Below are positions 19,317-64,000 of a stretch of 64,000 bases of DNA, piece by piece; positions within the stretch are counted from its first letter, which is position 1, and every line of letters begins with the position of its first letter. The notes under the pieces are model-generated. The model searched no databases, was not told the origin of the DNA, and saw only the letters and a list, made by a program, of their open reading frames with translations. Source of the DNA: Zygnema circumcarinatum SAG 698-1b (Eukaryota > Plantae > Zygnematophyceae); NCBI GenBank assembly GCA_037447605.1, contig CM074812.1, positions 2,232,001 through 2,296,000 on the forward strand, in the 5' to 3' direction. Both the position numbers and the translations under genes were made by a program.

Positions 19317-19318
19317 TA

Positions 19319-20564: not shown

Positions 20565-23423
20565 CTAGACACATTTTGATGTAGTTTTAATACATATTTT
20601 ACCAGCACTTCCACAGGGAGTTGCGTAGGGGTTGCAGTTATTGTAATCGCCACCTATACAAGTGGCTTTAATCAGCGCATCGCACTTAAGGTTGACGTTC
20701 GTGAATAGAACGGGGCATAGTGACTTAGTGCAAAGTGAACCCCCAAAGGTTACTTCTAAGGCACTTGTGGCCAAACATACCTGAAATCAGGCACACAAGA
20801 AAAATAATGTAAAAAGCACCGCAATACACCATTAATCGTACAAATTCTCGCTTCCCAACAAGGCCAAATGAGAAGATATCGGAAATTTGACCAGAAGACA
20901 ATTAAATGAGGCTATCCAAAAACCTGCACATTTGGACGAGACTTGACGCGAAAAAACCCTGCAACAAGGTTTTGTTGCATGCAACTGGACTTAAAACAGT
21001 GTATCATCAGCACTGGGTTTCAGAGAGATGTAACATTCACCTCTTGACCAAAAATGGTTTCTGGGGTATTAGCAAGCTTCAAACGGCCGCAGTAGATACC
21101 GGGGTTCAGGTAAAAGAACGCTGCCGCATCACCTTCCAAGAGATTGTTTATGATGGTGTTGCAAGTTTCGTTGCTTTGAACTTTGTACAGCTTGGTGCAG
21201 GGCGAAAGGTCCATAAGTGGTCCCCCTTTCACGCAAACCTACATAAGGGCTTTTCCTTACAAGTCAGTTCGACCCATTTCTCGTGAAAGATGCACAAACA
21301 TCCATTAGGACACAAGCAACTCATATCTCCCTCTATACTTCGCTTCTGTCCTCTTTCTCTCCCTTCCTTCTCTCTCTCACTTATTTTTCTTGCATATATC
21401 TATTACATCAACAAAACTCTAAGCCATGGCACTCACCTGTTGAAACGGTTGAAGCTGTGCACAATCCAGATTAGGGTTCAGTGTACCAGGCCCCGAAATA
21501 TCTTCGTCTAGGTTGAACAAGGCCTTAATAGAGTCACACGTATCTGTCTGCATTGAGATTGCGGTATTTAAGGATATCAGCAGGTGTGGGATTTAAGAGA
21601 TTTTAACTCTCAGCAGTGTTGAAACCCAACCTGTGCTTGAGTACGACATTTTTAATTCACCTGACTAATTATGTTACTTTCATGTGCTCTGAAAAAATAC
21701 GTGAATGCCGCTTCTCTCCTCCACTGTCCTTTCCTGTCCATCCCCTCCGCCTACTCTCTCCCTCTGATTTCTCCCTTCATTGAAACCCAGCTCTGCCTCT
21801 CTCCGAGCTCTCGTACTCAATTCAAGATTTTACTTTCGGTTTTGTACTGCTCACCTCAGTTACAGAATAAGAAATGGAACAATTTCGCGCTGCCGTGACA
21901 TTTACAACAGTGAGTGCTGCAAGGGGTTCATCGCATTGCAGTCCCTGCAAACAGGAGAAAGCTTCATTATGTCAAGTAGATTTACTAGTTTAGTACATCC
22001 TTATCTAACGCTCACCGACTTATCAACGTCAACAATTATCATCATATGTCTACATTCTTGTTCACACCATAGACGCGGCTAGGGCATCAGCTGCTTGGAC
22101 TATCCCCGAATAGGGCAACGATTTTCCGATTATTTAAACCTTTTGCTTCTCTCAGGCGCAATACGGGAAGGAGGGCGGGGCTTCCTAAATAAAAAGGTTT
22201 GCAGGTTGTCTTTACTTACAGGGTTTTCCACTGCAAAGTCTTCCTCTAAGATGCCATATATGTTGTAGATGGTGGAGCATGTTAAGGAAACTCCAACTGG
22301 CACGGTGTAATATGATGTACTGGCATTCAGAAGAGAAGCTGCGCAATGAATACATGGCCTATCATCATCAGATTCTAAACATAAGTGCCTAACATAACCC
22401 ACTTCCTCCATTATATATATGTTGCATAGTTCAAAAATCTGATCAATGATGACTTTAGAACATTTTCCATCTATATTTTTTCCTACAAATCCGTGTCATG
22501 ATCCATCATCGCCACTATCGCCTTCTCCTCGCTAAAACTGCCTTCGCTGCACTGACGTCAGCCTCACATCTCGATCCTTCACTCAAGTTTCTCTCCCATT
22601 CGCTGCACTCTGACGTAAACTTAGGCATTTTCTATCCCCTCTTTCTTCCTTCATTACCCATCTCTCTCTCTCTCTCCCTCTTTCTGCTCTTCCTCACCTC
22701 TTCCTCACCATCCTCTTCCTTACCCATCTCTCTCTCTCTCTCTCTCTCTCCTCTCTGCTCTTCCTCGCCAGATCTCCAAAACAAATACCTGGAATGCAGG
22801 TGAGGGCTCCACCAATGGAGTCAGAGGCATATCCTATGGGGCAGACGCACATGTAGGTTCCCGGAAAATTCGTGGAGTTCAGACACGTGCCAACACCGCA
22901 GGGATTCCGTGATGTGAACGTGCAAGGTGATGCTGCTCAAGCAGTCAAAGACCAAAAAAAAAAGACAGTTCAATTTAAGTTTATCAACTTCTTAGAGAAT
23001 CCCGACCATTCTTTTATATGAGCTCTGCGGGTTTTCGGGTCAATCTTGAAAATCATGGGGATCTTATACATCCTGCACAATGTGTAACAACGTTTTCCTC
23101 CTGCATTCCGATGTTTCATAAAAAGATGGTGTTCAAGCCCTCAGATATTCAAATTGCCACAAAATTTAAATCTTCAAGAAGTCTAAGGACAGTAAATGTG
23201 GTAAAAGCAAAGTGGGAGATTTTATCACCTGGAGCACAAGTTTGTGTTCCATCTGTATTGTTTACTGCCAGAAATCCAGCGCTACAGTCGCACAAATTGA
23301 TCAGATTTGATGTTCCGTCCGCGGGAATGCATATGCCGTTTCCGCAGGGGTTCATGCTGCCCGGACCGTACTCTAAAGAAAGAACCTTGCTAGCATAATT
23401 TTCGGTATTACATGGATCGTTGA
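20565..23423 (-). CDS. Paralogous 3' half of the LRR-papain-EGF-LysM gene (EGF, EGF, LysM x3, Cys-rich tail); upstream exons lost at gap 23453
   Basis: Exons 23229-23423, 22789-22932/5, 22220-22338, 21855-21944, 21437-21547, 21041-21238, 20565-20780 (stop). Same sizes and intact splice sites as the copy at 56879-59817. Confidence 0.85.
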
Positions 23424-23474
23424 CTGCAATAGGAGGAGACGCGAGAGAGGGGNNNNNNNNNNAAGGGGGAGGGG

Positions 23475-24360: not shown

Positions 24361-24385
24361 GCCCTTGAAGCTTCCCTCTACTCAC

Positions 24386-25190
24386 CGTTGTCAGCGGCAG
24401 CCACCGGAAACTCTACGGCCGGTTGGTCGTCCCTGTAATCTTTCGCATCTGCTTCTTCCTCCTTCTCTCTCTCTCTCTCTTTCTCCCTCTCTCCCTCCTC
24501 CTCTACCTCCTGCTCTCCCTCCACAACTCCATCCTTCTCTCCCTCCACCACTCCTTCCACCACTCCCTCCATCACTCCATCCTTCTCTCCCTCTCCTATT
24601 CTCTCCAACCATCCCTCCACTCCCTCCTTCGCTCCCTCCACCTCCCCTTCCTTCGGACCCACCACCTCTCCCTCCTTCACTTCCTCCCTCGTCCCTGCCT
24701 CCTTCTCCACTCCCGAACCACTCTCCTTTACCTCCTCCCCTCCTCCTCCCTCTCCACCCCCTCGCTCTCCATTTTCAGTGTATCTCCCACCTTCCTTAGA
24801 AACCTCTCCCTCTCCTCCCCCTCCAACTTCTCCTCCCTCAGCCTGCCCTTCCTCTCCCACCCCTCCCCCTCCCCCTCCCCCTCCTCCCCCTCCCTCACCC
24901 CCTCCTCCTCCCCCTCCCCCTCCCTCTTCCGCTCCTTCCTGCCCTCCAGCAACCCCCTCCGCCTCCCCCAGCCCTGCCATTTCCATGCTCTGAGCCCCGT
25001 CCCCCGCCCGCCCCCCTCCGCCCCCATCCATCAGCCGCAGCGCCAGCACGGTCACGGCGCAGGTCACAAGCGCGGCGACCAGCAACGTGCGCGCCGCGAC
25101 CCAGCCCTGCGCCGCCCGCCCGCCCGCGCCCCCCTCCCGGACCTGCTCGTACACGCCCAGCGAGAGCGTGCCGCGCCGCGTGGGAGCCAT
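24386..25190 (-). CDS. First exon of a putative type-II membrane protein with Gly/Glu-rich stem (function unknown)
   Basis: MAPTRRG...TLLVAALVTCAVTVLALRL (single hydrophobic segment), acidic low-complexity stem, donor G|gtgagt at 24385. Later exons not seen before gap 23453. Confidence 0.55.
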
Positions 25191-27632: not shown

Positions 27633-27960
27633 CTCAACGACTCTTCCCGCACGTGCCGCCGTACGAGGCGCTCGCTCCTCTCCTCGTCCGCTTAGGTTCG
27701 ATACGGTACGATACGATGCAATACGTACGGACAAACAGCAACTCTAACCTAATACCGCCCGCCTATTGTTAACACGGACACCCTTATATTTTCGCTACCC
27801 AATATTTTCGCCCCATATTTGCCGAAACCATGGCGAAAATATTGGGGGGGACTACTGTACTGTACTGAGATTGTCCGTACAGTCTGCCCCTGCAAGCAGA
27901 TCGGACCATTAGACAAACCAGTCGACTGATTGGCAACCAGTGGTTGCGGACCGAAACAAC

Positions 27961-28582: not shown

Positions 28583-28592
28583 NNNNNNNNNN

Positions 28593-29807: not shown

Positions 29808-30403
29808 CTAAAAGTACCAGCTCATTTTCGAAGTTCCCGAAGTATTGCTCCCCCCAGGAACTGTTGCAGCGCGAGGGAACCTCCCTGCCTCCTGGCTCCT
29901 CTCCTCCTCGATTATTTCATCAAAGTAGGAAATGTAGCTCGGGTCCATCGAGAGATGGCCCGCCGCATGGCTCTCGCCGAACAGTGTAAAGTTTCCGTCA
30001 CCCAAATCTTCAACAATGACGGTCGCTTTTATCTTCGGCTTCCACCAATAAAGAGGGTACCTGCATGAATAAGATGCGGAGGAATCTTAAAACTTCATCG
30101 AGGAAATATCAGAATCATATGTAAAGGTTGAAAGTGTCTGGTTTAAAACTGACGTAGGCCATTGTATGATTTGAAGGGACGAGGGGGAGGAGAGGCTCAC
30201 TGTCGTGCTATGTTGTTGGTAATGAGAGCGAGAGAGAGCAGGAGGAAGATGCCTGCAAGCGCAAGGAAGAGAATGAAGAATCCATGGCGGTGGGCGGCCG
30301 GCTGTGATAGACATGCTGCCAAGGCTGCCGCTCTGGCCAGGGGATGCACCGACCGGGTCAATTGCATGGCTGCATGCAACCGTCACCCATGTCAACATCA
30401 CTT

Positions 30404-30447
<44 letters not shown>

Positions 30448-30457
30448 TATCATCATT

Positions 30458-30497
<40 letters not shown>

Positions 30498-30989
30498 CCA
30501 TCATCATCATCATTGCTACTTATTGCATAATCTCAACGTCAACATAAGGATACCATCCAGCGCCCTCACTTCTCACCCCAACTTGAGGCTTCTCACCCTA
30601 AACCCTACCCTTGCCTATCCTCAGTCCTCAAGGGGTTCAGGGTTCAAGAGTTGTGCCCTCATCGCCCGTGCGTGCTTCGTGGCTGGCGTGAAGACGGATA
30701 GCGGCGGCCGGGCGGATAAGCGCCACCTGAGCAGGAAGGAAGAGCGCCTTGCTGCCCCGTGCCGGCGTGGAGAACCCCTCCGCGACGGCGAGCCCTATGA
30801 GCAGCGAGGAGCCAGTCCCGAGGACCAGGCTGCGCGGCTGCGAGAGAGGCGAGTCCACGGCTCCGTACACGAGGATGGCGATGCACCCGAAGACCCCCAT
30901 CATGATGAGGAGGGGCGTGGCTTCGCCACCGGCAGTCGGCGCGGACGTGAGCTGGAGATTGTAGTAGAGGAGGGTCACGAGAGACATGC
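29808..30989 (-). pseudogene. HPP-family (PF04982-like) integral membrane protein, 5'-truncated, possibly pseudogene
   Basis: Exon ~30727-30989 (MGVFGCIAILVYGAVDSPLSQPRSLVLG), exon ~30201-30370 (MQLTRSVHPLARAAAL...LALITNNIARQ), exon 29808-30060 (YPLYWW...stop). Motifs match the HPP family. One junction phase is unresolved. Confidence 0.7.
30406..30513. repeat. (CAT)n microsatellite in HPP intron
   Basis: About 35 near-perfect CAT units. Confidence 0.95.
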
Positions 30990-33680: not shown

Positions 33681-33704
33681 GTGACGTGACACACATGTCA
33701 CGTC
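33681..33704. promoter_or_regulatory. Inverted GTGACGTGAC/GTCACGTC motif near the TATA of copia LTRs (also 31567-31602, 44960-44986, 46183-46205, 53123-53149)
   Basis: Palindromic paired TGACGT cores recur in four otherwise divergent LTR families. Confidence 0.55.
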
Positions 33705-34847
33705 CCGTCCGCCATTGCAAACCCATGCACCGAGTTTGAGTGGGTGCACTCAGAAATAGCGACTTCTTCTTTGCCACCTCGGCGTAAAACCTACGGCGCT
33801 GACATTCTTGTCGGGTCGTACATCCCGTCCGTACTATTTCGCCATTTTCATACAGCGCTCGCGCACACCGCGATCTTCAGCCACGCCCGACATCTGACCC
33901 GTACACGCACCGAACTTCGCGGACCCATGCGGTCCCGTGGCACATTCGGTTTGCCGCCAAATATCTTCCATGTTGTTTCCGCGCCGCAACTTTGCGCTCC
34001 GCGTTTCGCGCCCGCGCCGCGACCAATCAAAGTTGCGCGTCCGTTCTCCGCGTCCGTACTCCTCTTACTTGTGTCAGCGCCGCGACCAATCAGCGCCGTT
34101 CGTTCGTACTCCGCGCACTCGCGGCGCACTCACCAAAGTCAGAGCACCGACATTCCTAAATCTAAGAGCACTACGCCTAGCAGATCTCATGTTCTACAAA
34201 CTGAGTACCACAACAAGTTAGTGTGTGCCATACAATGTCTAACTATCATACACTAACACTAACAATCCCCCTCTTGGGACTCAGTTCCTCATGGGCCCTA
34301 GCCCAATCAACCTGCTGTTCACTAGTAGTGTCTCCCCTCTGACCCCCTTAGTCAACATGTCTGCAGCCTGCTCTTTTGTTCCTACAAACTTCACCACTAT
34401 CATCCCTTCCTCTACCAACTCTCGCACATAATGATACTGAACCCTAATGTGCTTGGTCCTTTTATGGAACACAGGGTTTTCCATAAGAACTAGATGACTG
34501 GTTGTCCGTAAAAAGAGTCAATGGTGTTTGTGGTCGCTTACATTCTTCAAAGAAATGTTGGAACCACATCCCTTCCTTCGCTGCGTGGCACGCTCCCATG
34601 TACTCTCCTTCGGTGCTTGACAGCGCCACCGAATCTTGTAACTTCGAGCTCCATGAGATCGCGCCTCCTCCGTTCAGGAACACAAATCCTGACGTCGATC
34701 GTGACGTGTCCACGTCACCTCCCCAATCTGAGTCGGTGTATCCGATCACTCTAGTCGGCCCCCTCTCAAACATGAGGCCGTTATCCAAGGTCCCTTTCAC
34801 GAATCTGAAGATCCGCTTCACGGCCTCCCAATGTTCAGGACCGGGAT

Positions 34848-44138: not shown

Positions 44139-45706
44139 TGTTGATGTATGAGGTACATCAAGTAGTTGGTAATTAGTTCCTAGCATGAATGTTGTCCGGG
44201 ACATCAATGTTTTGGTGTAGGGACAATGTTATGCATGAGTGATTCGGTAAAGGACCGAACATAGGTGGTGCCCGTATCGTTAGGGCACAGTACGACAGGT
44301 CTAGGAATAGTCTAGGGTCGTAGGTTTGCGGCTTTGACTTAGATTGAACCAAAGGGGGCGCGCGGAGTGCGCCTGGACGGATTTGGAGCGCGGCCGTACG
44401 GACGGCGCGCAAATTGTACGGACGACGCGGAAGTTGACGGACGCGGAGATTTGGAAGCGCGAGAGGCGGATTTGCGTGAAGCGACATGATTGGTCGCGAC
44501 AGCACGCAAATCGCGGCGCATCTCTATGCGTGACGTGACGCATGGTTCGGCAATGTCGGTGGAGAATATGTGAGATGACGGAGTTCGCTGATTGGTCGCG
44601 GCGCAAGTGCGGAGTATGGAGCGCGCGACACATGGCACAACTGGAGGACTTTTGAGGCAGTGCGCGAAGCGGCGGAGTGAAGCGTCAGTGGAGGCGCTTC
44701 AGGAAGTCGGTGACGAATCAGGCCACGCCACGTGGACCACTCGGTAGTGGGTCGGCGGGTCTGAGCGTACGGAAGAAAGGTCGGCTGCCGGAAAAGTGAG
44801 AAGGGACCAAAAAGGGGACCCGCCGCTTGGTGAAACTGTACGGCTGGGCAAAGCGTAGGTCGGTGCCACTATAGGTTTACGGGACCACTATAGGTTTACG
44901 GGACCACTATCGTAGGTCGCTAATTGGGTGCGCCGCTTTGCCGGATGCAAGGGCCGGCCGTGACGTGACAACTTGTGTCACGTCACATCGCCATGGTTGT
45001 TCAAAAGGGAGCAAGCTTCACTCGCTCAACTCACTCTCTCTGAACGTTATGCTGCTCAACCTTCGTGATAGGAAGAGTAGGCGAAGGCTGAGGCCTTGAG
45101 GAGTCCGGCCTTGTGTATGAAGGTCGTGAAGGAACTAGCTCTCATCATGCTAAGCTTTAGTGAAAGAGATAGATGATGTGTCCCTCATGTGTTGAGGTAG
45201 AGGAGGAGTTCATGGAGGCAGTTAGTGCTTGGCTACTGCAGTTGAGGTGTAAGCTATCTATCAGAGGATAGGATAGTGCTCATGTGAGGATGACAATCTA
45301 GCATAAGGGATTATGTAGATTTCCTAAAGAGCTTGTATTACACTCTTGAAGGTTAAGGAGTTTTATGGCCGTGGGCTTTCTCCTTATTACTGCATCATTT
45401 GTCATGTGAGTCCTCGTGTTGGATTGACGTGGTGGATGAGTGGAGGCGACCATTGTATGGGCGGTGTGTTGCTCCACACGAGGAGATCATTGGAGGAGCG
45501 TGGACTTGAGGAGCCGAGACCATGGAGGAGTTGAGGTGTTCTTGTAGGTGGCGCTTTTAGTTTTCCGCTGTGCGCACCTGGCAAGGGGTGGATGGAAGGC
45601 AGATCGTGGAGGAAGCCGTATGTGGCCCAAGTGGAAGATGAAGAAAGTTTTGAGCTTCATCCGGGCATGTGTTTTCCTTTCCTTGAGTCTGCCCCTTGCA
45701 CCAACG
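44139..45706 (+). mobile_element. Solo LTR, family B (1568 bp), in copia A gag
   Basis: TSD gtccg (44134-38, 45707-11). The host frame reads FSIPAFDGSD|YKGWRWRL across it. Confidence 0.92.
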
Positions 45707-46771
45707 GTCCGAACCATCGAACGCTGGGATGCTGAACTTCACGTGATCCTCCTCGCCACCTTGGGCTCTGATACCACTTGTTGAAGCAGGGGTCTGCTCC
45801 CCACTTCCGGCGCCACCTCGGGTGTCGCCCTCCATTGGAACTTGAGTTCCCACGGATGAAGACATTCAAACACTCAAAGCTCTATCTTACTTCACTCATC
45901 GCCCATAACAACAGAATGAAGCTACAAGACAAGCACAGCGGAAATCACAATGAGAGAGTGTTAGGAGAAAGCTCACGGCTCTAAAACTCCTTATAATAAA
46001 ACTGTCTTCCCACAATGAAGTTCTCCCACCACTTCAAGGTCCCTCTTACTCACTACCTCACGACACAAGTGTAGGCAGCCTAGCAGCACGAGCAGGCTCT
46101 GAATAAGACCCGAGACTATGACAGAGTAGTGTGGGTGGGTTACTTCCCATAATAAAACTACGCACTATATAATATGGTGTCTGTGACGTGACACACATGT
46201 CACGTCCCGTCCGCCATTGCAAACCCATGCACTGAGTCTGAGTGGGTGCACTCAGAAATAGCGACTAGTTAGCTGCCTCGTAAACCTACGGCGGCGCCGA
46301 CCTAGTTCTTGTCGGATCGTACATCCGTCCGTACTGTTTCGCCATTTCGCCAGCGCTCTTTCGCAGTCTTCGCCCGCCGACATCTCGGCCGTACACTCGA
46401 ACTCGCGGACCCACATCGCGAGTGGTCCACGTGGCGCATTCCGGTTTGCCGCCAAATATCTTCCATGTTGTTTCCGCGCCGCAACTTTGCGCTCCGCGTT
46501 TCGCGCCCGCGCCGCGACCAATCAGAGTCGCGCGCGTCCGTACTTTGTGAATCCGCGGCCGCGCCTCGACCAATCAAGGTTGCGCGTCCGTACTCCTCTT
46601 ACTTGTGTCAGCGCCGCGACCAATCAGCGCCGTTCGTTCATACTCCGCGCACTCGCGGCGCACTCACCAAAGTCAGAGCACCGACATTCCTAAATCTAAG
46701 AGCACTACGCCTAGCAGATCTCATGTTCTACAAACTGAGTACCACAACAAGTTAGTGTGTGCCATACAATG

Positions 46772-52564: not shown

Positions 52565-53870
52565 TGTTAGTGTAGAGTAGTTTGGAACTTGTAATACACT
52601 AAGTGATTTGGTACTAAGTTCTAAGGGGTGTGCTCATAGCGTCCATATTGCATGGAGGACCGCCTAAGCGACCGTACAAGTCTTCGGGGGTGTGCGTGTA
52701 GCGCGCGCATGAAGATCGGGCTAAAATGCAGTTGTACGGAGCGGCGCGCGAGTGTACGGCCAGCAGAGCGCTGATTGATCGTGGCGCGAGTGCGGAGCGT
52801 GGAGCGCGCAACACGTGGCGTGACGGATGGACATCAACGGTGGTGCACGAAGCGGCGGAACAAAGCGTCAGTGGAGTTGCTTCAGAATGTCGGCTGCGAA
52901 TCAAATGGCGCCACGTGTACCACTCATGTTTTGGGTCCGCGAATCTGAATGGACGGCTGTACGGCCGGCAGCCGGAAAATGGCAAAGGGGACCTGACGAA
53001 CAGAGGATCTGTACGGTAGGGCAATCCGTAATTCGGTGTCGTAGTATGATTACGAGACCACCTTTGTAGGTCCTAGTTTGGTCTTGCCGCTTTGCCAAAT
53101 GCAAGGGCTTGCAATGGTGGGCGTGACGTGACATCTAGTGTCACGTCACACGAGCATGTTAGTATATTATGGAGGTATGTTTTGTAGAAGTTAACCTTCT
53201 CGTGACTCACATTGGACGAGAGGCTATCTTGCTTTGGGCCTAGAAGATAGTGGGAAGAGTTCAGCTTGTAGTGGGGTGGTTTATTCACGTAGCTTGAGTT
53301 TAGGAGCTTGGCTCTAGTGTTGTCAAGTTGTATTCACCTTTATCTTAAGGAGTTTTAGGCTGCAGGCTTTCTCCTTACATCTTCTCCTTTCCGCTGATCT
53401 GTTCTATTGCATTCAGTATTGTTGTGTGTCTACATCCTTTAAGAGTGTGATTGAACAAGTCATTGAAGATGTCGAGTTCTACCGAGGGTAGAGGAGAAGT
53501 GGCAGCACCTCGCTCGGAGGCCGCTGCATCAACAAGTGGTATCAGAGCCGAAGGCGTTGAAGACGTGAAGTTCACCATTCCAGCGTTCAATTGGAAGAAC
53601 TACAAGCGGTGGAAGTTTCGCATGCTCACGGTGCTGGAGAACAAGCGACTGTTGGGGTATGTGAATGGCTCCATTGTGGCCCCGGATTCAGAGATGAACG
53701 CTCTAGAGTTTGAGCAGTGGAGGGTGAAGGATTGTAAGGTTAGGACCTTGCTTTGTGTTGGCGTTAGTGAGGATCCTACAGATCTGCATGCTTCCCTCCC
53801 CGAGCACCTCCAACTGGATTGTTCCGCTTTGCGTCATCGAAACCCCTTGTCCTGTTGCCGAGTAGAGGTG
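52565..53870 (+). mobile_element. Ty1/copia element D, 5' LTR plus truncated gag, followed by an inverted pol fragment
   Basis: LTR 52565-53534, PBS TGGTATCAGAGC at 53537, gag to ~53772. ~53773-53868 reads YSATGQGVSMTQSGTIQLEVL on - strand. Confidence 0.85.
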
Positions 53871-56800
53871 GAATGAATGCCCTTCCTTGTGACTTGTGCA
53901 GCTTTGGTGTTGTGCTCCTCGAGCTCATCACTGGCCAGCCCGCCCTCATCAGGGACATGGACGAAGAAGAGGAGGAGATTTTGACTTCTTTGGCAAGCTG
54001 GGTAAGGCGTGTCAACCTATGCCCTGTTCCGGTCCTAGCGCTTGAAAAGCACTTCACTTGTAATAAAATTAGTTGAGCCAAGCCACAAACGAATCTGTAC
54101 AATGCGGCTTTCTCTAGCTTAATCGCACATGGAAAAAGCCTAACAAGTTAGTGACATAAGCAATTTTGGGTGGAGCATGTTCGTCCTATAAGCAGCTCAC
54201 TGTTGCACCGGAATCGACTGCCCTTACCTTGTGTCACTTGCAAGGATGTTGGCAGGCCATTGAGTTCAACATTCTCGTATCATAAGGACTTAGCTATAGC
54301 TCTTGGCAATGCACTGTGGCCTTGGAAAAATGTGGAGAAAGTCCTCGTCTTTCGAAACTGCATCTTATGTTTATGTTAACTTTATCAAGAGCATAGTGTT
54401 CCGCTCAACGAGATGTGTGAAGAGGTGATAGTGTTTGATATCCTCTGCTCATTAAGCTTGCGCATGGTCATGCCTATGAATTCCGCAATGTCATATTGCA
54501 TTTCATATACATTAGGATCAGAGTCAAGCTTCCCTTAGTCAACTTACAAATAGCTTGGAGATGCGCCTTATTTCAGTCCATATGCTTACCTTCATCCAAA
54601 AAAAAGCTTGTTGGCTATCAGGTGAGTCGTTGTGCTTAGCATATTTTGACAATTATGGACTTTTTTGAGAATTTGAATTGAATATTGAATGTCACTGATT
54701 GAAGAATCGACTTTCTTCTCTTGCAGGCTCTACCAAAGATGGCAACTTCGCTGGGCCTCTCTGCCCTTGTAGACCCCAATCTTGAGGGAGAGTACCCCCT
54801 TGAGGCCATGCAGTCCTTCGCCAGCATCGCCGCATCCTGCCTTCAGAGGGTCTCCAAATACCGTCCGGACATGGCGGATGTGGCAAGTGAACTGCGGTTG
54901 CTTCAGGCAAAGTTGAGGGCTATGGACGACGAGAGAAACGAAGAACAGGTGAACATGAAAATCTCAAACGTTCCCATTCCGATCAATGTTGATGACGGAT
55001 CAGAAATGTCGGGACTATCCAACCAGAAAAGTGCAATGGAGGACGTACTTGCTCGAGTTCCTAAAGATAGCCTTATGATGGGACGGTAGGAAGTTCTTCT
55101 ACTCGCTTACAGTGACTGATACTCAAGTAAAAATCACTTGCATCAGAATCGCCGAAAATCTTGTTTTCATTGATGCAGAATCTATTGATTCTGGATTGAT
55201 TGTCCTGAGCTTCATGACCTGATGGTTGTGCTTTCCATCTAAATACAAAAAAATTGGTGAACTCAATTATTAAAAAATGCAATTTATTGTTTTGTTAAGT
55301 GAAGCTCGTTGTTAGAAGTGGAAGAGTGGCCGGTGATTAAGAGGGAGAGAGAAGAGAAGGGTAGGGGGGAAGTGGGGGATGGAGAGACTCAGGGGAGGTG
55401 AGAAAGGGAGTGGGGGGCGGATGTTTGGGAGGGAGGGAGGGAGGAAGGGAGCTAGCTAGCTAGTTAGCGAACCCCCGCCTTCCTCACCCGACCTCCCTTA
55501 TGCATTCTCATTACGTATGACACATATTTTTAAAAATTGAAAAAAGCCGCGTCCCGGGACAAGAAGTATGTACAGATGTGGACTACGTCCAACAGGTTAG
55601 AAGCAGCAGCAAACCCGAGTAAAATTCAAATAACGCCCTGAACACCCGCTGAAATAACTCGGAAACAAGAGTCACCTTGTCTAGCGTATCACCGCTTGGC
55701 TGTTCGCGGTCCTTTTGCGAGGCGAGCACGTGGAAGGAACGGCTCGGCCGCGTGCAGGTCGCAGGGGGGGAAGGGGGAGAGGCGGGATCCAGGATTGCAT
55801 GGAAGGGGAGGAGGGAGACGAGGAGGGCCGGGGCGAGGAGGGAGAGGGAGAGGCAGGCCATGGCGGTTGGAGTGGAAGGGAGGGACGGAGAGAGGGAGAG
55901 AGAGGGGCAAAGACGTTAGCGGAGAGAACCAGCGTGAATATGAAGAAACTGTTTTATGGAGTTCGCGTTCTAAAAGGTTGGTACGCGTTCGAGGAATGAC
56001 TTGTGAATGCACAAGGGGAAGGAAGGCAGGCAGGCAGGTGACGTGTACGGAAGGACAAAAACGACCATAACGGGTAATTTTCAATTTCAGTCCTAGTTTC
56101 AGATCCAGTTTCAAAGTCCGTCCAGTTGAAGATTTAGTTGCAGTTAAACTTTCCGTGGCAATTTCATTTCAGTTTCATGCTGCGCGGTTGCAAGAGAAGA
56201 GCAGGACCTGGTCAAAGCCGCGTGTCACAGAAACAATTTCCATGGTTTCGATCTCCGTAAGTTACGAGCTGTAGTTCTTTGGGGAAAAGTGAGAGAGCAG
56301 AGCGGCAGAGCGTTGCCCTCTACCGGTACTGGTGTTTCGGATCCAGGCGTTGAGCTCTGGATTACCAACACAAGATTAGCCTTGTATTCAAAAGACTGAA
56401 TTTGCTTTACCAATTCTAGCCAAAAGGGGGACGGAGGGAGGGGGGAGGGAGGGGGGAAGAGGGGGGAGGGAGGCAGGACAAACAATGTCTGAGCCATACG
56501 CTGCAGTACCATTTTCAGTTCCAGTACGGCAACAGCTACACAGACATTCATCAGCGTCCGTGAAAGGTCTACAGATTAAAAACAATCTCTTACCAATCCA
56601 GCAGCACCAGACAGGTTTAACTACCTCACTGGCAAGGGATGAGATGTTTGAAAGAATTAAATTAACTCATATGTGCTTGGCTTGCCCAGCCCCAGCCCCC
56701 CCAGCTGGGGAATACAATGTAGTTGACAACGTGACAGCAAGAAATTGCAGTGTGCGCCCATCATCGAAAACCTCCAAGTCGCCAAGTCAGAGCACGGAAA

Positions 56801-59109
56801 AGGCTCAACAGTTGAAGACCGCACTTGTACCTGACCATAGGGTTGCAGCCTGGCCATTTTACTCATATAAGACCCCTCCTAGACACATTTTGATGTAGTT
56901 TTTATACATATTTTACCAGCACTTCCACAGGGAGTTGAGTAGGGGTTGCAGTTATTATAATCGCCACCTAAACAAGTGGCTTTAATCAGCGCATCGCACT
57001 TAAGGTTGACGTTCGTGAATAGAACGGGGCATAGTGACTTAGTGCAAAGTGAACCCCCAACGGTTACTCCAAAGTCACTTGTGGCCAAACATACCTGAAA
57101 TCAGGCACACAGGAAAAATGATGTAAAAAAGCACCGCAATACACCATTAATCGTACAAATTCTCCCTTCCCAACAAGGCCAAATGAGAAGATATCGGAAA
57201 TTTGACCAGAAGACAATTAAATGAGGCTATCCAAAAACCTGCACATTTGGACGAGACTTGACGCGAAAAAACCCTGCAACAAGGTTTTGTTGCATGCAAC
57301 TGGACTTAAAACAGTGTATCATCAGCACTGGGTTTCAGAGAGATGTGACATTCACCTCTTGACCAAAAATGGTTTCTGGGGTATTAGCAAGCTTCAAACG
57401 GCCGCAGTAGATACCGGGGTTCAGGTAAAAGAACGCTGCCGCATCACCTTCCAAGAGATTGTTTATGATGGTGTTGCAAGTTTCGTTGCTTTGAACTTTG
57501 TACAGCTTGGTGCAGGGCGAAAGGTCCATAAGTGGTCCCCCTTTCACGCAAACCTACATAAGGGCTTTTCCATACAAGTCAGTTCGACCCATTTCTCGTG
57601 AAAGATGCACAAACATCCATTAGGACACAAGCAACTCATATCTCCCTCTATACTTCGCTTCTGTCCTCTTTCTCTCCCTTCCTTCTCTCTCTCACTTATT
57701 TTTCTTGCATATATCTATTGCATCAACAAAACTCTAAGCCATGGCACTCACCTGTTGAAACGGTTGAAGCTGTGCACAATCCAGATTAGGGTTCAGTGTA
57801 CCAGGCCCCGAAATATCTTCGTCTAGGTTGAACAAGGCCTTAATAGAGTCACACGTATCTGTCTGCATTGAGATCGCGGTGGTAAGGATATCAGCAAGTG
57901 TGGGTTTGAAGAGATTTTAGGGCTCAGCAGTGTTGAAACCCAACCTGTGCTTAAGTACGACACTTGTAATTCACCTGACTAATTATGTAACTTTCATGTC
58001 CTCTAAAAAAACACGTGAATGCCGCTTCTCTCCTCCACTGTCCTTTCCTGTCTATCCCCTCCGCCTACTCTCTCCCTCTGATTTCTCCCTTCATTGAAAC
58101 CTAGCTCTGCCTCTCTCCGAGCTCTCGTACTCAATTCAAGTTTTACTTTCAGTTTGCACTGCTCACCTCAGTTACAGAATAAGAAATGGAACAATTTCGC
58201 GCTGCCGTGACATTTACAACAGTGAGTGCTGCAAGGGGTTCATCGCATTGCAGTCCCTGCAAACAGGAGAAAGCTTCATTATGTCAAGTAGATTTACTAG
58301 TTTAGTACATCCTTATCTAACGCTCACCGACTTATCAACGTCAACAATTATCATCATATGTCTACATTGTTGTTCACACCATAGACGCGACTGGGGCATC
58401 AGCTGCTTGGACTATCCCCGAATAGGGCAACGATTTTCCGATTATTTAAACCTTTTGCTTCTCTCAGGCGCAATACGGGAAGGAGGGCGGGGCTTCCTAA
58501 ATAAAAAGGTTTGCAGGTTGTCTTTACTCACAGGGTTTTCCACTGCAAAGTCTTCCTTTAAGATGCCATATATGTTGTAGATGGTGGAGCATGTTAAGGA
58601 AACTCCAACTGGCACGGTGTAATATGATGTACTGGCATTCAGAAGAGAAGCTGCGCAATGAATACATGGCCTATCATCATCAGATTCTAAACATAAGTGC
58701 CTAACAAAACCCACTTCCTCCATTATATATGTTGCATAGTTCAAAAATTTGATCAATGATGACTTTGGAACATTTTCCATCTATATTTTTTCCTACAAAT
58801 CCGTGTCATGATCTATCTCCATCTTCACCACTATCGTCTTCTCCTCGCTAGACCTGCCTTCGCTGCGCTGACGTCAGCCTCACATCTCCATCCTTCACTC
58901 AAGTTTCTCTCCCATTCGCTGCACTCTGACGTGAACTCAGGCTTTTTCTTCCTTCCATTCCCATCTCTCCCCCTCTCTCTCTTTCTCTCTCTCTCTCTCT
59001 TTCTCTCTCTGCTTGTCCTCACCTCTTCCTCACCATCCTCCTCCTTACCCATCTCCCTCTCTCTCTCTGCTTTAGCTCACCTCTTCCTCACCATCCTCTT
59101 CCTTACCCA

Positions 59110-59150
<41 letters not shown>

Positions 59151-59845
59151 GCTCTTCCTCACCAGATCTCCAAAACAAATACCTGGAATGCAGGTGAGGG
59201 CTCCACCAATGGAGTCAGAGGCATATCCTACGGGGCAGACGCACATGTAGGTTCCCGGAAAATTCGTGGAGTTCAGACACGTGCCAACACCGCAGGGATT
59301 CCGTGATGTGAAGGTGCAAGGTGATGCTGCTCAAGCAGTCAAAGACAAAAAAAAAAAGACAGTTCAATTTAAGGTAATCAACTCCTTAGAAAATCCTGAC
59401 CATTCTTTTATATGAGCTCTGCGGGTTTTCGGGTCAATCTTGAAAATCATGGGGGTACTATGCATCCTGCACAATGTGTAACAACGTTTTCCTCCTGCAT
59501 TCCGATGTTTCATAAAAAGATGGTGTTCAAGCCCTCAGATATTCAAATTGCCACAAAATTTAAATCTTCAAGAAGTCTAAGGACAGTAAATGTGGTAAAA
59601 GCAAAGTGGGAGATTTTATCACCAGGAGCACAAGTTTGTGTTCCATCTGTATTGTTTACTGCCAGAAATCCAGCGCTACAGTCGCACAAATTGATCAGAT
59701 TTGATGTTCCGTCCGCGGGAATGCATATGCCGTTTCCGCAGGGGTTCATGCTGCCCGGACCGTACTCTAAAGAAAGAACCTTGCTAGCATAATTTTCGGT
59801 ATTACACGGATCGTTGACTGCAATAGGAGGAGACGCGAGAGAGGG
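53869..59845 (+). repeat. Segmental duplicate of 15931-23452 (lacking the 17996-19617 insert)
   Basis: Co-linear, high identity with scattered SNPs and indels over RLK 3' exons, intergenic DNA and LysM/EGF exons. Confidence 0.95.
53902..55089 (+). pseudogene. Orphan duplicate of the last two RLK kinase exons
   Basis: Exons 53902-54001 and 54727-55089 match 15964-16063 and 16791-17153. Upstream is copia sequence, not RLK. Confidence 0.9.
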
Positions 59846-62800
59846 GGAGAGGGAGAGAAAGTGGGAGAAGGGCAAGGAAGGGCAAAGGAAGCGAGGGGCC
59901 AATGGATATGGAGTTAGAGTAAGTTGGAAAGGGAGGGACAAAGACAAGCAAGCTGGGGTAAGCTGATGTGAATTTAAACATGCAGTGAGTATATCATCCC
60001 ACAATTCAATTTGGAGTACTCACTCCTCGAAGGACACCATACTCTTACCAAAAGCAGCACAACCATCTCATTTCATGCGCAGTCTTTCCTTTCTCACATT
60101 TCTCGCTATTATGCAGAACATACACTCTTACCTTTGACTGGCATAATCGGTATCATGGCCGGTTGGACATTGATTCCACAAATTCCGTAACCGCCGACTA
60201 TCTTCATTTTCATGTAGCCTCCGTCCCCCCAATTGGCTCCCCATGAATTTCGGATAATCCAATATGGTGGGGAGGAGGTTAAGCTATATCCGACGACTAC
60301 AACAGCGTGGTTCACCCCATCTGAGTAACAGTTCTCATCATCATAAACACCCTGGAAAAACTCAACAAAATATTATAAGCAATACGACGGGTGTAGAAGA
60401 CAGAAATTGATCAAGCACATCGCCGTTCTAAAATGAAGAATATTAAATAGCTGAAATGGAATCTAGCACCTAAATGCATTCTCCTTCCCGTGCCTTCACA
60501 AGCTGCTAAGATAGAAGAAGACTTATTCTCTTATGTGTAAACGAAATTTAGTATGAAACATTTAAGTCTGTCAAGCAAATGAGAGTGCTTATGATTCAGC
60601 TATAATATGTAGCTATGGCCCTCACCATGTTAGGGTTGTAGTTGATGAAACTGTCTGAGCGTGCTTCAATGGTAACCACTACTGGCTGCTGTTGTATGGC
60701 CAACAAGATACCTGTCCAGCCGCTCAGCTGAACCTTTTCAAACGAAAGAACTCGCAAGTCGCTGGTTGACTGCACGTGGCAGTAAGCCAAACAATTAAAG
60801 GATTAGATCTACGCCTGCTCGAAATGTAGAAGTAAATTAAAAGTTCATCGACTTAGGTTTTCCTGGACTAAAATTTTACCGAAGCAATACGGAAAATTAG
60901 GATGCATAAACCTTGCTGAATTGAATTGTGAACATGGGCCCATCCACGAAAACAATGGAGAAGGGTAAGTGGGTCACAGAATCGACAGAGGCAGAGTGGG
61001 AGAAAGTGGGAGAACGATGCAGACATGTGCGGTTGCGTGTCTGAGACAAGATCATTCCCTCTCTCTCTCCCTCCCTCCCTCCCTCCCTCCCTCCCTCCCT
61101 CCCTCTCTCGATTCCTTTCCCTCTCTATCTCTCTATTTAAAGCTCCTTTCTTCGACAGGATGAGTGCACGAGAGACAGAATGAGGCAAACCAATGAAGTA
61201 TATGTGCCCGTTTGTCTGCATTTGTTAGTACGAAAGAGATAGAACAGATAAAAGAGCAGAAGGGAACAATCAGGAAAAGAATTCGGAAAAGTGAAATAGT
61301 CGAAAGTTGTTCATACATTTAGCTGCGAGCATGTCAATGAAGCCTTGTACTTAGTGGATAAGCCGGTGGTTGCTGCATAGTCAAATGCCTCTGTCGGCCA
61401 TCCAGTAGACGAACAAGATCGATTTGGTGTCAAACACCTCAGAACTTGGCCTTCAAAGATGTTTGGAAGGCTTTTATCTCCCGCAAAGGATATATAATAA
61501 GCACTCTCAATGGCGGAAATGACCGAAAACAACCAACACGAGTCTGCAAATGAAAGCAAGATTGAGTATGGGTAAATTACTTATGCAACAGTCATGTCCT
61601 TTAGCTCACCTTGGGAAAATCGGCAGACCTTAGTTTGGATAGACATGAAGCAAAGGACACTTAAAATTGCATTTCTGTCGTTCTGAGGAGTAGCTAGAAA
61701 GGACAAGAGATCACGGGTATTTTAATGAGAACGTATGAATAGGCCCCCTTCTCATCAACACTGACGACACTGCTGCAAACATTGTCTGCGGAACTCATTA
61801 TTCTCGACCTGCGAATGAATGCTTGTAACTGTAGTTTCAACCTGAACTCAATTTCTAATAATAGAAAAGACCTTGAATTCGTACGACATTCATTTTCGGT
61901 CATGTGGACCTTAAGAGTATCGAAATAGTGGCCCTCTCTTTGCTAGATAGTGAAAGTTCAATAGGAAAGCATCAAACCATAATTTATCGACCATAATCAG
62001 ACCATGATTTTCCGTTGTAGATTGTTTAGATTACGGAACAGCTTGTGGACACAGCATACTGAAGATTGCCTTGTCTTTCACACGATTTTTTTGTTCCTTG
62101 GGCAATCTAGGTTTTGTAGAGTTTCCTTGATTTCCTTAAAAATCCAATTGTCTGAGGTTTGCTGAACTTTAGGGGCACTGCAATGTAAGTTATTTTAAGA
62201 CATTTAGGGTCTTCAGTAATTCCGGCACATACTGCAACTCTCTTGGTTCTTGACTGCTTGCACGGTCCCCTCTCCCACCCAATTCCAGTTGGTAGCGACC
62301 AGCCATGAAGGAAGACCACTCTTCGAAACGACAAACCCGGAGCTCACGTAGCGGAAATAGCTGTTCAACTTCACCGGAGAAGTTGGAAAGCTTAACCCGA
62401 ACGCATATGTTCCTGAAAGATGAATGTAAATTCCTTGTCAATTTTCATTGAACCAGATGCGATGAGTGCAGAGTGAATGGTTCAAAAGTGAAGAGAGGGA
62501 GGGCGAGAGGCAGAGAATGGGAGAGGAGGGATGCAGGGAGGACTGGACGATGAAGGGGGAGGAGAAGGTGGGAGGGAGTGGAGAACAGACGACATAAAAG
62601 AGGTAAAAATCCTCCTTGAGCACCATGCGCTTAGTATTCCTTTTTCTGACCGACGAGTTTCTTTAGAGCTTATGAAATTACCGAAGACGCATCTGTTGGT
62701 ATTGTTAATGGCTGCAATATATCCCACATTACATGTGCAATTGTAGGTAACAGTAGAGCAGATTCCATGGCCTGCACATGCGCCCATAGGCTGTGCGGCG

Positions 62801-63759
62801 TCGCAAAACTTAAGGCAATCTTTAGCGCTCCTCTGTGTACTCTTTTCGCAAAAGTCATCATTCCATTCAGCCACTGTAGAATTGAAGCAATTCCCCTTAA
62901 TAGGCGGACATGTAGGTATGCCGCTCAGTTTGAACACGGGAGTCCCTGTCAAATAGTTGTTGGTGAAGTTAACAGCAGTCGTAAGAAGTACGGAATCAAC
63001 GTCCACGTTGAGGAGTCCAGTAAGAAAATTGTTTGCCAGGTTTCTGTCACAATAGAGAGCACATTGCACATTTATGAGCTCTTACAGTCAACTTGTACGA
63101 GGAAAGACAGGCTAGAATTTATCGAAATTTGGTGTCCTTGTGGGAAAAAAAACTGGCCTTCTATAGGCTGAGTTGACTGCTTCCTATTGGTACGACATGC
63201 CATACAAACAAACTCACATGGTTGCCAGATTGCGGAGCGTCCAAATCGTCGAAGGGATCTCTCCAGTCAGTTTATTATTGGATAAGTCCCTGCAAACAAT
63301 GCGGGTGTCCTAATTAGAAAAGTTTGGATGCCTTTATTGTAAATCCTCCAATAGCAAAAAGGACCTCACTCTTCATTTTGAGCACGAATGTTCAATTGAC
63401 TATGAGAGAGAAATTTAAAAGGACGACTTACAGGAATTCCAGGAGGGTGACCGTATCTAGGACGTCAGGGATGGCCCCTACCAAGTTATTTTCAGACGCG
63501 TACCTGCATTGAAATATTCCATACATTTTTATGTACAATAAGTGATATATCACTTTATCTGTAACTCGTCAACGCAACCAGGGAAAGTGAATCGTTGAAA
63601 CAGGGAAAACACATTCATAGATAATCAATTGAAGTTATCCAAGAGAGAACTAGATGTGTGGCATACAAACTTCGCCTGAAATCTTACAGGCTGGTGAGAG
63701 AGACACAGTCTCCAATACTCGATGAAATGTTCCCTGATAACTTGTTTTTATATAGGGAT
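56879..63759 (-). CDS. Multidomain protein: LRRs - Cys-rich/EGF - papain-like C1A cysteine protease - EGF - EGF - LysM x3 - Cys-rich tail; 5' end beyond window
   Basis: LRR exons 63688-63759, 63432-63503, 63218-63289. 62682-63043 (LRR + CAGHGIC..CTCNVGY). 62233-62412 (VKNQESC). 61543-~61345 (NSCW). 60626-60769. 60132-60351 ([15 protein letters not shown]). EGF 59623-59817, 59183-59326. LysM exons 58532-58650, 58167-58256, 57752-57862, 57356-57553. Final exon 56879-57094 with stop. No TM segment seen. Confidence 0.88.
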
Positions 63760-64000
63760 CTGCACATGAATGCATTGTGTTAAAGGAAGTATGCATTAGA
63801 ACTAAGGAACGTCCAAGTTGAATACTATCAACTGAAAAAATGTCACCTGCAAGCTTTTTTCCAAACAGAGTCAAACAATATGGCGAAACCCTAAAACTGT
63901 TTCCTTGATTCAAACTTTAACCTTCTAGTTCGCCTTCAAAAAATCTGAGCCAATCTGAACAAAGAAATAGTGGAATTATGAATTAAGCATCGTCAAATTT

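Follow-up and report, generated by a model that had tools for sequence, protein, structure and literature searches.

Extracellular immunity in land plants relies on separate parts: receptors with LRRs, receptors with LysM modules, and papain-like proteases that are secreted. The LysM receptors CEBiP/LYP and CERK1/LYK carry three tandem extracellular LysM modules with inter-module cysteines, and LYK and LYP/CEBiP are held at the membrane by a TM or GPI anchor and may or may not carry a kinase; LRR receptor-like proteins combine plant-type 24-residue LRRs with a Cys-rich cap. In C1A proteases, an I29 propeptide is normally required for folding. In chitinase A of a fern and a horsetail (PrChiA, PDB code 4pxv; EaChiA, PDB code 5bum), LysM modules are fused to a glycoside hydrolase. 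Peptidases joined to LysM repeats are listed in green algae and Physcomitrella, with loss in angiosperms (PMC2728734), and a pheromone-induced C1A protease of Volvox carteri has been cited (PMC2474614). These proteins serve as precedent for the peptidase-LysM combination and are compared here by description; neither for Volvox VcPap-11 nor for the peptidase-LysM proteins are LRR or EGF modules reported.

The gene described here lies in a 64-kb window (the whole stretch of DNA that was analyzed) and encodes LRRs, a papain-like C1A protease, EGF modules, and LysM repeats; we refer to it as the LRR-papain-LysM gene. Like the receptors above, its predicted product has three tandem LysM repeats with inter-module cysteines and plant-type LRRs with a Cys-rich cap, but it unites them with an enzyme in one chain and lacks a TM segment, a GPI signal, and a kinase. 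The protease matches plant C1A enzymes (cathepsin L-like: bromelain, ficin, actinidin, and RD21-type) in fold and catalytic residues, with bromelain, ficin, ananain, and cathepsins L, K, and H as best PDB sequence matches, whereas it lacks the I29 propeptide and a granulin domain and is flanked by an LRR-EGF arm on one side and an EGF-LysM arm on the other. The closest solved LysM modules are those of chitinase A, which share the Cys pattern C..YTV..GDTC..I...NPG..C, although here the modules are fused to a protease; the LysM of a Volvox chitinase (PDB code 5k2l) matched only at E 0.11. Homologs with the same architecture, which align colinearly (35-41% identity) over the LRRs and all modules through LysM3, are all unnamed predicted proteins: ME000166S01720 (P0008) and ME000065S09001 (P0019) of Mesotaenium endlicherianum, proteins of Closterium spp. 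(e.g., P0022 and P0089), and the EukProt Trinity entries P0091 and P0126.

Gene structure and transcripts

The LRR-papain-LysM gene has 15 exons in the window, running on the minus strand from 63759 to 56879 (Table 1), and all of its introns have GT..AG ends. The spliced in-window product is 806 aa long, contains a single, terminal stop, and ends in ...KTTSKCV. RNA evidence came from assembled contigs, rather than single reads, of four runs (X1 to X4) from two studies. Joints in these contigs cover all junctions from the LRR/EGF1 exon to the tail exon, each corresponding to removal of a canonical GT..AG intron, and one 2352-nt contig of run X1 spans this entire interval. The earlier note had placed the LRR, protease, EGF, and LysM exons in one transcript, and the joints bear this out. 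The 3' half of the gene belongs to a tandem duplication (see below), and contigs over the duplicated 3' exons mix the alleles of both copies (T at 59231 in all runs), so continuity downstream of EGF2 is shown exon by exon and not as one molecule. The protease-to-EGF2 joint itself carries the copy-2 allele (C at 59807), in contigs with the protease exons. The EGF2 exon is skipped in contigs of X3 and X4, which join 59326 to 60132. Expression was of moderate depth and constitutive, being found in all four runs, for which no infection is known.

At least 1.1 kb of the transcript lies upstream, past the window end; an RNA contig extends 1397 nt upstream of 62999. The locus is thus the 3' two-thirds of a transcribed gene whose remainder lies beyond the window, and because the window ends within the gene, its N-terminus and any signal peptide fall outside. 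The span of 56879 to 63759 given for the gene earlier was accurate in its coordinates and motifs but fell short as a whole-gene extent, since the gene continues upstream beyond 64000. The acceptor at 63043 and the three upstream 72-nt LRR exons were predicted solely from AG/GT sites and phase, and a scan of 63760 to 64000 revealed no additional LRR exon.

Table 1. Features of the LRR-papain-LysM gene and of the tandem duplication (window coordinates)
Feature	Position	Strand	Evidence
LRR exon, 72 nt, phase 1; first in-window exon	63688..63759	-	AG/GT sites, 72-nt length, LRR consensus; outside RNA-contig coverage
LRR exon, 72 nt	63432..63503	-	Predicted; aligns to LRRs of P0008 and P0091
LRR exon, 72 nt	63218..63289	-	Predicted (AG/GT sites, phase)
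Two LRRs, Cys-rich LRR cap, EGF1	62682..63043	-	Donor: RNA joint 62411/62681; acceptor inferred from phase
Linker, conserved pre-segment (12 residues), mature protease start to oxyanion Gln (KNQESC)	62233..62412	-	RNA joints
Protease exon with catalytic Cys (N/SCW across the junction; model Cys255)	61317..61543	-	RNA joints, PF00112, catalytic-column check
Protease exon, central part of C1 domain	60626..60769	-	RNA joints; colinear with P0008
Protease exon with catalytic His391, Asn411, Trp413	60132..60351	-	RNA joints, PF00112, PDB matches
EGF2 exon, 195 nt, in frame, skippable	59623..59817	-	Joint 59817/60132 in X1, X2
EGF3 exon	59183..59326	-	RNA joints; Pfam EGF E 5e-4, 20.7 bits
LysM1, most of it	58532..58650	-	RNA joints; family LysM HMM 12.0 bits, model aa 570-610
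LysM1 end, linker, LysM2 start	58167..58256	-	RNA joints; HMM match 623-668 covers this and the next exon
LysM2, main part	57752..57862	-	RNA joints; HMM 16.5 bits
LysM3, complete in a single exon	57356..57553	-	HMM 51.3 bits; profile match to PDB LysM
Cys-rich tail (71 aa) and stop codon	56879..57094	-	RNA joint 57092/57354
Copy 2 of tandem segmental duplication	53869..59865		blastn 96-97% identity to 15931-23452
Truncated paralog (copy 1): EGF2, EGF3, LysM x3, and tail exons only	20565..23423	-	All splice sites kept
Putative new first exon of paralog	24386..25190	-	ORF, donor AACG/GTGAG; only last ~30 nt RNA-backed

Modules of the predicted protein

To characterize the protease domain, we examined its motifs and the columns that they occupy in a 43-sequence family alignment. 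The motifs KNQESC/NSCW (across a splice junction), VNHAV, and IIRNSWG are all present, and the Gln19, Cys25, His159, Asn175, and Trp177 columns are filled by Q249, C255, H391, N411, and W413. Pfam Peptidase_C1 (PF00112; cut-off, 20.7 bits) matches two single exons above its cut-off, at E 3e-8 (61317..61543) and E 3e-15 (60132..60351), and the latter exon also matches cathepsin K and ananain in the PDB at E 1e-16 to 1e-15. Thus, both the intact catalytic residues and the Peptidase_C1 assignment claimed for these segments in the earlier note held up, and the domain is predicted to be an active C1A protease. Serine occupies the catalytic Cys position in 9 of the 43 aligned sequences, so not all family members need be cysteine proteases.

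The segment that precedes the protease is unusual. I29 (PF08246) gave no match on exon 62234-62410, on whole P0008 or P0091, or on their pre-protease segments; exon 62233..62412 has no Pfam match whatever, and PDB zymogens align to the protease from the mature domain onward only. Because the I29 propeptide is absent, protease activity is uncertain. Its place, directly before the mature N-terminus, is occupied by a short conserved pre-segment with the family motif [FY]R[YH][AV]S (FRYVS at model aa 212). In an AF2 model of P0008:440-900, this pre-segment is ordered (pLDDT 76-84), while the linker from EGF1 to the pre-segment is predicted to be disordered. The P0008 model matches mature papain-like enzymes structurally at Z 27, and in one case, that of pro-triticain (PDB code 8zlq), the structural alignment reaches ~20 residues into the pre-segment. 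An hhalign comparison for remote I29 similarity used P0122, in which no I29 precedes the first C1 domain, and was uninformative.

Five tandem 24-residue LxxLxLxxNxLxGxIP repeats are recognizable in the spliced product. Single LRR exons (23 aa) are too short for Pfam, and the in-window LRRs align with repeats of P0008 and P0091 that Pfam identifies as LRRs. EGF1 matches Pfam EGF_2 at E 2e-3, with 18.8 bits against a cut-off of 22.1, and EGF3 likewise scores under its threshold (20.7 against 21.5 bits), Pfam calling EGF at the equivalent position in P0008, P0019, and P0091. EGF2 has no Pfam match and was recognized from its Cys pattern and its alignment to homologs.

The LysM repeats required family-specific profiles. 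Pfam LysM (PF01476; CBM50) found nothing at E<=1 in single exons and is called in the colinear homologs. A family profile seeded with the LysM3 exon matched the LysM domains of Equisetum chitinase A (5bum; E 1.8e-10) and Pteris ChiA (4pxv; E 2.7e-7), and a family LysM HMM built without the window's sequence recognized exactly three repeats in the model, all scoring (Table 1) above the best of 500 shuffles (6.8 bits). The three repeats proposed earlier are therefore supported by solved LysM domains and an independent HMM, and their expected detection by HMM search was obtained with the family HMM and profile but not with Pfam LysM on single exons. An AF2 model of the LysM3 exon (pLDDT 75.6) has a strand-helix-helix core, with the last strand not called; in a Foldseek search with this 66-aa model, all E-values were >1 and none was significant, although among the 9 chains listed, 5 belong to LysM proteins.

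For the Cys-rich tail, neither the PDB nor Pfam gave a match, and it resembles no known family. An HMM of the fourth LysM of relatives did not match it either, and we dropped the ideas that it is a degenerate LysM4 or a granulin domain. No kinase was found in the 806-aa model, and the maximum Kyte-Doolittle 19-residue mean over its length is 1.4, with no TM-like stretch, in agreement with the earlier reading that no transmembrane segment is present. Because the N-terminus lies outside the window, secretion rests on the homologs: all five full-length homologs begin with a signal-peptide-like N-terminus, and a signal peptide and LRRNT cap are present in homologs.

Family distribution and a local tandem duplication

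Comparison of the in-window model with its homologs revealed colinearity over all modules and a shared pre-segment. P0091 aligns at 40.6% identity over 780 aa (E 5e-156) and P0008 at 35% over 795 aa, and P0126 and P0019 are likewise colinear; Pfam calls LRR, C1, EGF, and LysM in all four. With the LRR-cap-EGF1 exon as query, an exhaustive representative search recovered P0008. The closest protein match to the product in any search was at 41% identity. No member of the LRR-C1A-EGF-LysM family was found in land plants, and we found no paper describing the family. The earlier note had called the architecture a candidate novel one; this stands insofar as no member has been characterized, but the same order occurs in Mesotaenium, Closterium, and EukProt proteins. 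The LRR-papain-LysM gene is, on these comparisons, a member of an unstudied algal family rather than one of a kind, and the family appears so far only in zygnematophyte-type streptophyte algae.

Its members vary considerably. The zygnematophyte relatives share with the LRR-papain-LysM protein the pre-segment and the absence of I29, whereas they have a fourth LysM where this protein has three and a unique Cys-rich tail, and its long branch falls outside both the Mesotaenium and the Closterium clade. Besides being large, the family is expanded in Closterium with swapped lectin modules: many Closterium members also bear legume lectins, and in some of these Pfam calls no LysM. Several members (P0017 and P0018) have no LRRs yet keep the pre-segment and the protease.

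The 3' half of the LRR-papain-LysM gene, together with the 3' end of an LRR-RLK gene on the plus strand, makes up copy 2 of a tandem segmental duplication; the similarity of the two copies was extended to 59865 by an RNA contig. The copies differ at 13 of 1070 exonic positions versus 237 of 2924 non-exonic alignment columns, and 6 of the 8 non-synonymous differences fall in the Cys-rich tail exon. In three runs, transcripts of the truncated paralog in copy 1 are the more abundant by 5-7x. Abundant RNA contigs bear, at 59865, a 33-nt loose end that aligns to 24383-24412 and so covers the end of a putative new first exon. This exon would encode a Met followed by a hydrophobic stretch resembling a signal anchor and ~230 aa of low-complexity sequence rich in Gly and Glu. 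Only copy 1 lies beside a complete RLK, and a 10-N gap lies exactly at the copy 1 end. The truncated EGF-LysM copy arose from the LRR-papain-LysM gene by tandem duplication. We rejected the idea that the gene is a recent chimera made by this event, because distant species carry the full architecture and a complete RLK is present at copy 1 only; both observations fit a middle segment that was simply duplicated in tandem. Capture of the LRR arm from the neighboring RLK was also dropped, there being no specific similarity to the RLK ectodomain.

Proposed function and its alternatives

The LRR-papain-LysM gene probably encodes a secreted protease of a zygnematophyte family that is held by its LysM repeats on GlcNAc polymers, with defense or another microbe interaction as the likely context. 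The full domain order would be, in the N-terminal part, a signal peptide (seen in homologs only), LRRNT, ~14-16 plant-type LRRs, and the Cys-rich cap with EGF1, and, in the C-terminal part, the pre-segment, a C1A domain without I29, EGF2, EGF3, three LysM repeats, and the Cys-rich tail. Such a protein would be secreted and either soluble or wall-bound. Its chitinase-A-type LysM array may anchor the protease on GlcNAc-containing polymers, either chitin of parasites (fungi or chytrids) or the peptidoglycan of bacteria, and the LRR-EGF arm may bind a protein partner or substrate or replace the missing propeptide in folding or latency. It is reasonable to infer targeting to GlcNAc polymers, because the closest LysM domains of solved structure come from chitinase A of a fern and a horsetail, where they bind chitin. 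Indirectly, the expansion of the family with swapped lectin modules and the local tandem duplication also point to a biotic role.

The protein might instead be an endogenous protease of wall or matrix remodeling, acting in conjugation, cell separation, or wound response, with its LysM and LRR modules binding the alga's own glycoproteins; we consider this unlikely, although it has evidence in its favor. VcPap-11 of Volvox, the one algal C1A protease for which a physiological context is reported, is induced by sex pheromone (PMC2474614). Constitutive, moderate expression in all four runs with no known infection is consistent with such a role. Moreover, the Volvox protease, in work attributed to Amon et al. 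in 1998, is reportedly also wound-induced and said to carry chitin-binding repeats. Against remodeling, the chitinases that provide the nearest solved LysM relatives are antifungal, we know of no chitin in zygnematophyte walls, and a family that has expanded while exchanging its lectin heads is more suggestive of diversification toward external targets.

Less probable still is a one-molecule sensor-protease, as the earlier note proposed, in which the LRR-EGF arm would keep the protease latent in the propeptide's stead until an LRR ligand released it. The lack of I29, the conserved pre-segment directly before the mature N-terminus, its order in the P0008 model, and the entry of the pro-triticain alignment into it would all suit this mechanism, but the linker from EGF1 to the pre-segment is predicted to be disordered, and the LRR cannot be essential for latency because several LRR-less members (P0017 and P0018) keep the pre-segment and protease. 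The most explicit form of this mechanism, in which the LRR-EGF arm and pre-segment would form an intramolecular latch, the LysM repeats would dock on a microbial wall, and an LRR ligand would open the latch so that the protease could cut, is marginally more doubtful again.

We regard it as very improbable that the protein serves for binding alone, as a receptor-like molecule or a decoy, with the papain domain as scaffold or bait. Substitution of Ser for the catalytic Cys in some relatives and the missing propeptide fit a decoy, but the LRR-papain-LysM gene itself keeps Gln, Cys, His, Asn, and Trp, and the exons that it shares with its paralog differ far less than the introns do. Finally, the absence of single reads, the near-identical 3' exons of the two copies, and the 10-N assembly gap where copy 1 ends could suggest separate genes in chimeric contigs or two haplotypes mis-assembled as a duplication, but such an artifact is extremely improbable given canonical intron removal at each junction, agreement among four runs from two studies, identical domain order in independent proteomes, distinct 5' exons of the two copies in RNA, and an RLK that is complete beside copy 1 only.

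New at this locus are the absent I29 propeptide, the truncated duplicated paralog, and the skippable EGF2 exon; the first two had been overlooked in the earlier note. The duplication provides a dated example of gene birth: the tail-to-tail junction of two genes was duplicated, both parents were left intact, and the product was a truncated EGF-LysM gene with a putative new first exon, now expressed above its parent. The LRR-C1A-EGF-LysM family unites LRRs, LysM repeats, and a papain-like protease in one predicted secreted chain and was found in no lineage other than the algae closest to land plants. Since the family is large, has varied lectin modules, and belongs to that lineage, it would allow a direct test of how apoplastic proteases came to be joined with recognition modules ahead of the origin of land plants. 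It also poses the question of how a C1A protease may fold and be kept latent without the usual propeptide.

One mRNA joins LRR, EGF, protease and LysM exons

Three-frame reading of 64000-56400 found leucine-rich repeat (LRR), EGF-like, papain-like and LysM-like segments on the minus strand, in the order proposed by the earlier note. For transcript evidence, contigs assembled from four public RNA runs of the same organism (X1 to X4), rather than single reads, were compared with 57000-62999; public runs of this organism contain 37-46% of the window's sampled words, as expected if they carry exons only. The contigs contained intron-removing joints on both the protease and the EGF-LysM sides of the gene, and every implied intron has GT..AG ends. 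A 2352-nt X1 contig carries all jointed exons at one depth. As the earlier note had claimed, a single mRNA is shown to code for all the modules, from LRR and EGF through the protease to EGF and LysM. The X1 contig extends 404 nt beyond 62999, and its X3 counterpart 1397 nt. No additional exon was recognisable in 63760-64000. In-window, the gene has 15 exons and 806 codons with a single terminal stop. The transcript continues for at least 1.1 kb upstream of the window, which lacks the N-terminus; the model's first residue aligns with residue 369 of the best full-length homologue. The EGF2 exon (195 nt) can be skipped in frame, since X3 and X4 contigs join the last protease exon to EGF3. Low-depth contigs (3-15x) that run unspliced through introns are unspliced pre-mRNA or DNA traces in the RNA libraries.

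Features of the locus (window coordinates)
Feature	Coordinates	Strand	Basis or remark
RNA joints, protease side	62411/62681, 61543/62233, 60769/61317, 60350/60625, 59817/60132	minus	RNA contigs
RNA joints, EGF-LysM side	59326/59623, 58650/59183, 58255/58531, 57862/58167, 57551/57750, 57092/57354	minus	RNA contigs
Three upstream 72-nt LRR exons		minus	AG/GT sites and reading phase only
Acceptor of large exon	63043	minus	AG/GT site and reading phase only
Unspliced contigs	57067-57383, 58227-58557, 58624-58959, 59347-59613, 61599-62055		
Duplicated segment, copy 1	15931-23452		
Duplicated segment, copy 2	53869-59846		
Kinase exons adjoining copy 1	13971-16066	plus	
LRR receptor-like kinase (RLK) at copy 1	13971-17200	plus	
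RLK fragment beside gene	53869-55089	plus	last kinase piece onward
Paralogue's putative first exon	Met at 25190		hydrophobic stretch, then about 230 Gly/Glu-rich residues
Last 30 letters of abundant contigs	24383-24412		
Retroelement-like repeats	27982-28552, 33277-34000		
Inter-copy repeats	27982-34000 vs 45069-46495	both	91-96% identity
1.6-kb insertion in copy 1	17995-19617		
Pieces similar to insertion	25376-25441, 27639-27842		80-89% similar
10-N assembly gaps, fixed size	23453-23462; runs at 25880, 26784, 28583, 35223, 37136, 48681, 50724		

Protease domain and binding modules

Pfam Peptidase_C1 matched two exons taken singly (E = 3e-8 and 3e-15), and the PDB matches of the protease were cathepsins and plant papain-like enzymes (up to 1e-16). 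Gln, Cys, His, Asn and Trp occupy the catalytic columns in an alignment with 42 relatives, from which the active-site residues noted earlier are seen to be intact. Ser replaces the catalytic Cys, with His and Asn kept, in 9 of the 43 aligned sequences (Mesotaenium endlicherianum P0019 and eight others); these are possible serine-nucleophile or inactive variants.

The 59 residues ahead of the catalytic Cys had no Pfam match, Pfam found no PF08246 in the homologues, and alignments to PDB zymogens began at the mature domain, none covering the propeptide. A propeptide is absent, and in its place lies a short pre-segment, G[LF]...P...N..FR[YH][AV]S.G, conserved from Closterium to Zygnema. An AlphaFold model of residues 440-900 of P0008, a Mesotaenium homologue (mean pLDDT 74), has this pre-segment ordered and the preceding linker not. 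Mature papain-like structures match the protease part from model residue 148 (Z 27), and the alignment to one zymogen, pro-triticain, begins at residue 127; the model only hints that the pre-segment may follow the path of the propeptide end.

EGF3 scored 20.7 bits against a Pfam cut-off of 21.5, EGF1 was weaker, and EGF2 was identified by Cys pattern and alignment only. A profile of the LysM3 exon and 21 homologous segments matched the solved Equisetum chitinase A LysM (E = 1.8e-10) and that of Pteris chitinase A (E = 2.7e-7); matches to bacterial and Volvox LysM were weak. A family HMM from which the window's row was excluded gave the three repeats 12.0, 16.5 and 51.3 bits, against a maximum of 6.8 bits in 500 shuffles. 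By sequence, the modules belong to the chitinase-A type of LysM. An AF2 model of LysM3, built from its exon (pLDDT 75.6), has a strand-helix-helix core, and its Foldseek matches were all non-significant, five of nine being to LysM proteins. Of the HMM calls on the segments proposed earlier, Peptidase_C1 was made in single exons and LysM by the family HMM and profile, but the Pfam LysM model, with exons searched singly, did not match the window's repeats. No match was found for the Cys-rich tail (71 aa), and its reading as a fourth LysM was rejected because an HMM of the relatives' fourth LysM gave no match. As previously stated, the 806 aa hold no transmembrane-like stretch. All five full-length LRR-bearing homologues have a signal-peptide-like N-terminus, and by extension from them the protein is presumably secreted.

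A tandem duplication and an expressed truncated paralogue

The 3' half of the gene, from EGF2 to the tail, lies with the 3' end of a plus-strand LRR-RLK in a duplicated segment whose copies are 96-97% identical. Copy 1 retains all seven exons and splice sites, and differs from copy 2 at 13 of 1070 exonic positions (5 synonymous and 8 not, 6 of the 8 in the tail exon) and 237 of 2924 non-exonic alignment columns. Because the kinase exons upstream of the segment adjoin copy 1 only, copy 2 having just the duplicated last piece, and the protease and LRR exons adjoin copy 2 only, the arrangement is what would be expected if the central part of a tail-to-tail gene pair had been duplicated in tandem, leaving two whole parents and two fragments between them. 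The RLK beside the gene is a 3' fragment, probably a pseudogene left by this duplication.

Retroelement-like repeats occupy parts of the inter-copy interval, which also holds repeats in both orientations. Copy 1 has, in its intergenic part, a 1.6-kb insertion that copy 2 lacks; it is probably a dispersed repeat, because similar pieces lie upstream of the paralogue's new exon. The first assembly gap falls exactly at the copy 1 end of the segment; thus the real junction, including the acceptor used by the paralogue mRNA, is missing from the assembly.

The LysM fragment in copy 1 did not die. In X2-X4, depth over the shared 3' exons (about 350-440) is 5-7 times that over the protease exons (about 50), and the abundant contigs have the copy-1 allele at each of 59807, 59231 and 57061. 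They read 48 nt beyond the EGF2 acceptor and then 30 letters of the paralogue's putative first exon, whose RNA support covers its last 30 or so nt only; the open frame of this exon runs up to a donor site and joins EGF2 in frame. Shared-exon contigs mix the alleles of both copies, and C at 59807 ties the protease-to-EGF2 joint to copy 2. At 59231, all four runs have T, as does copy 1, vs C in the window; this reflects either a strain difference or gene conversion between copies, and C-to-U editing is ruled out, since the gene lies on the opposite strand.

Relatives and proposed function

With the LRR-cap-EGF1 exon as query, an exhaustive HMMER search yielded 15 weak matches, including P0008 (1139 aa), in which Pfam finds LRRNT, LRRs, Peptidase_C1 (6e-42), EGF and three LysM stretches (2e-19). 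Word-indexed searches from P0008, P0018 (a member without LRRs) and P0091 (a EukProt protein) returned 44-70 proteins each, from Mesotaenium, eight Closterium strains, one EukProt transcriptome and a few Logan contigs, and none from land plants or other lineages save generic cathepsins at the list bottoms. From its first LRR to LysM3, the model aligns colinearly with P0091 (40.6% over 780 aa, E = 5e-156), P0126, also from EukProt (39%), P0019 (35%) and P0008 (35%). In a protease-region tree, the window's protein falls outside the Mesotaenium and Closterium clades, on a long branch. Legume-lectin modules also occur in many Closterium members, some of which have no LysM called by Pfam. All family proteins are annotated "unnamed" or "hypothetical," and our literature search found no description of an LRR-protease-LysM fusion. 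The earlier note's view that no characterised protein has this architecture stands, but the architecture is not unprecedented, given the colinear homologues in Mesotaenium, Closterium and a EukProt transcriptome. Residues 136-234 of P0014, a 592-aa LRR receptor kinase, share an LRR-cap-EGF-like segment with the family (E = 4e-4), so the LRR-cap-EGF1 arm may have a common origin with an RLK ectodomain.

A Volvox C1A protease is said to bear chitin-binding repeats. Martinez and Diaz (2008; PMC2474614) cite it, from Amon et al. (1998), as pheromone-induced. A "peptidase + LysM" architecture occurs in green algae and moss and was lost by angiosperms (Zhang et al. 2009, PMC2728734).

Judging from the module families, the LysM array would anchor or concentrate the protease on GlcNAc polymers, and the LRR-EGF arm would bind a protein, be it substrate, partner or the enzyme itself. 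We favour a function in microbial interactions: the LysM modules are of the type found in antifungal chitinases, the family has expanded with its binding heads swapped, and the locus was recently duplicated. The main rival is a role in mating or in remodelling the wall of the alga itself. The ligand-gated latch of the earlier note is possible, but it is weakened because members without LRRs retain the pre-segment and protease. The original observation is thus confirmed and its interpretation partly supported. The gene is a member of an uncharacterised, lineage-restricted family, itself a variation on the papain-like protease theme. The locus stands apart by its three LysM modules with a novel tail, by an EGF2 exon that can be skipped and by a truncated paralogue that is expressed.
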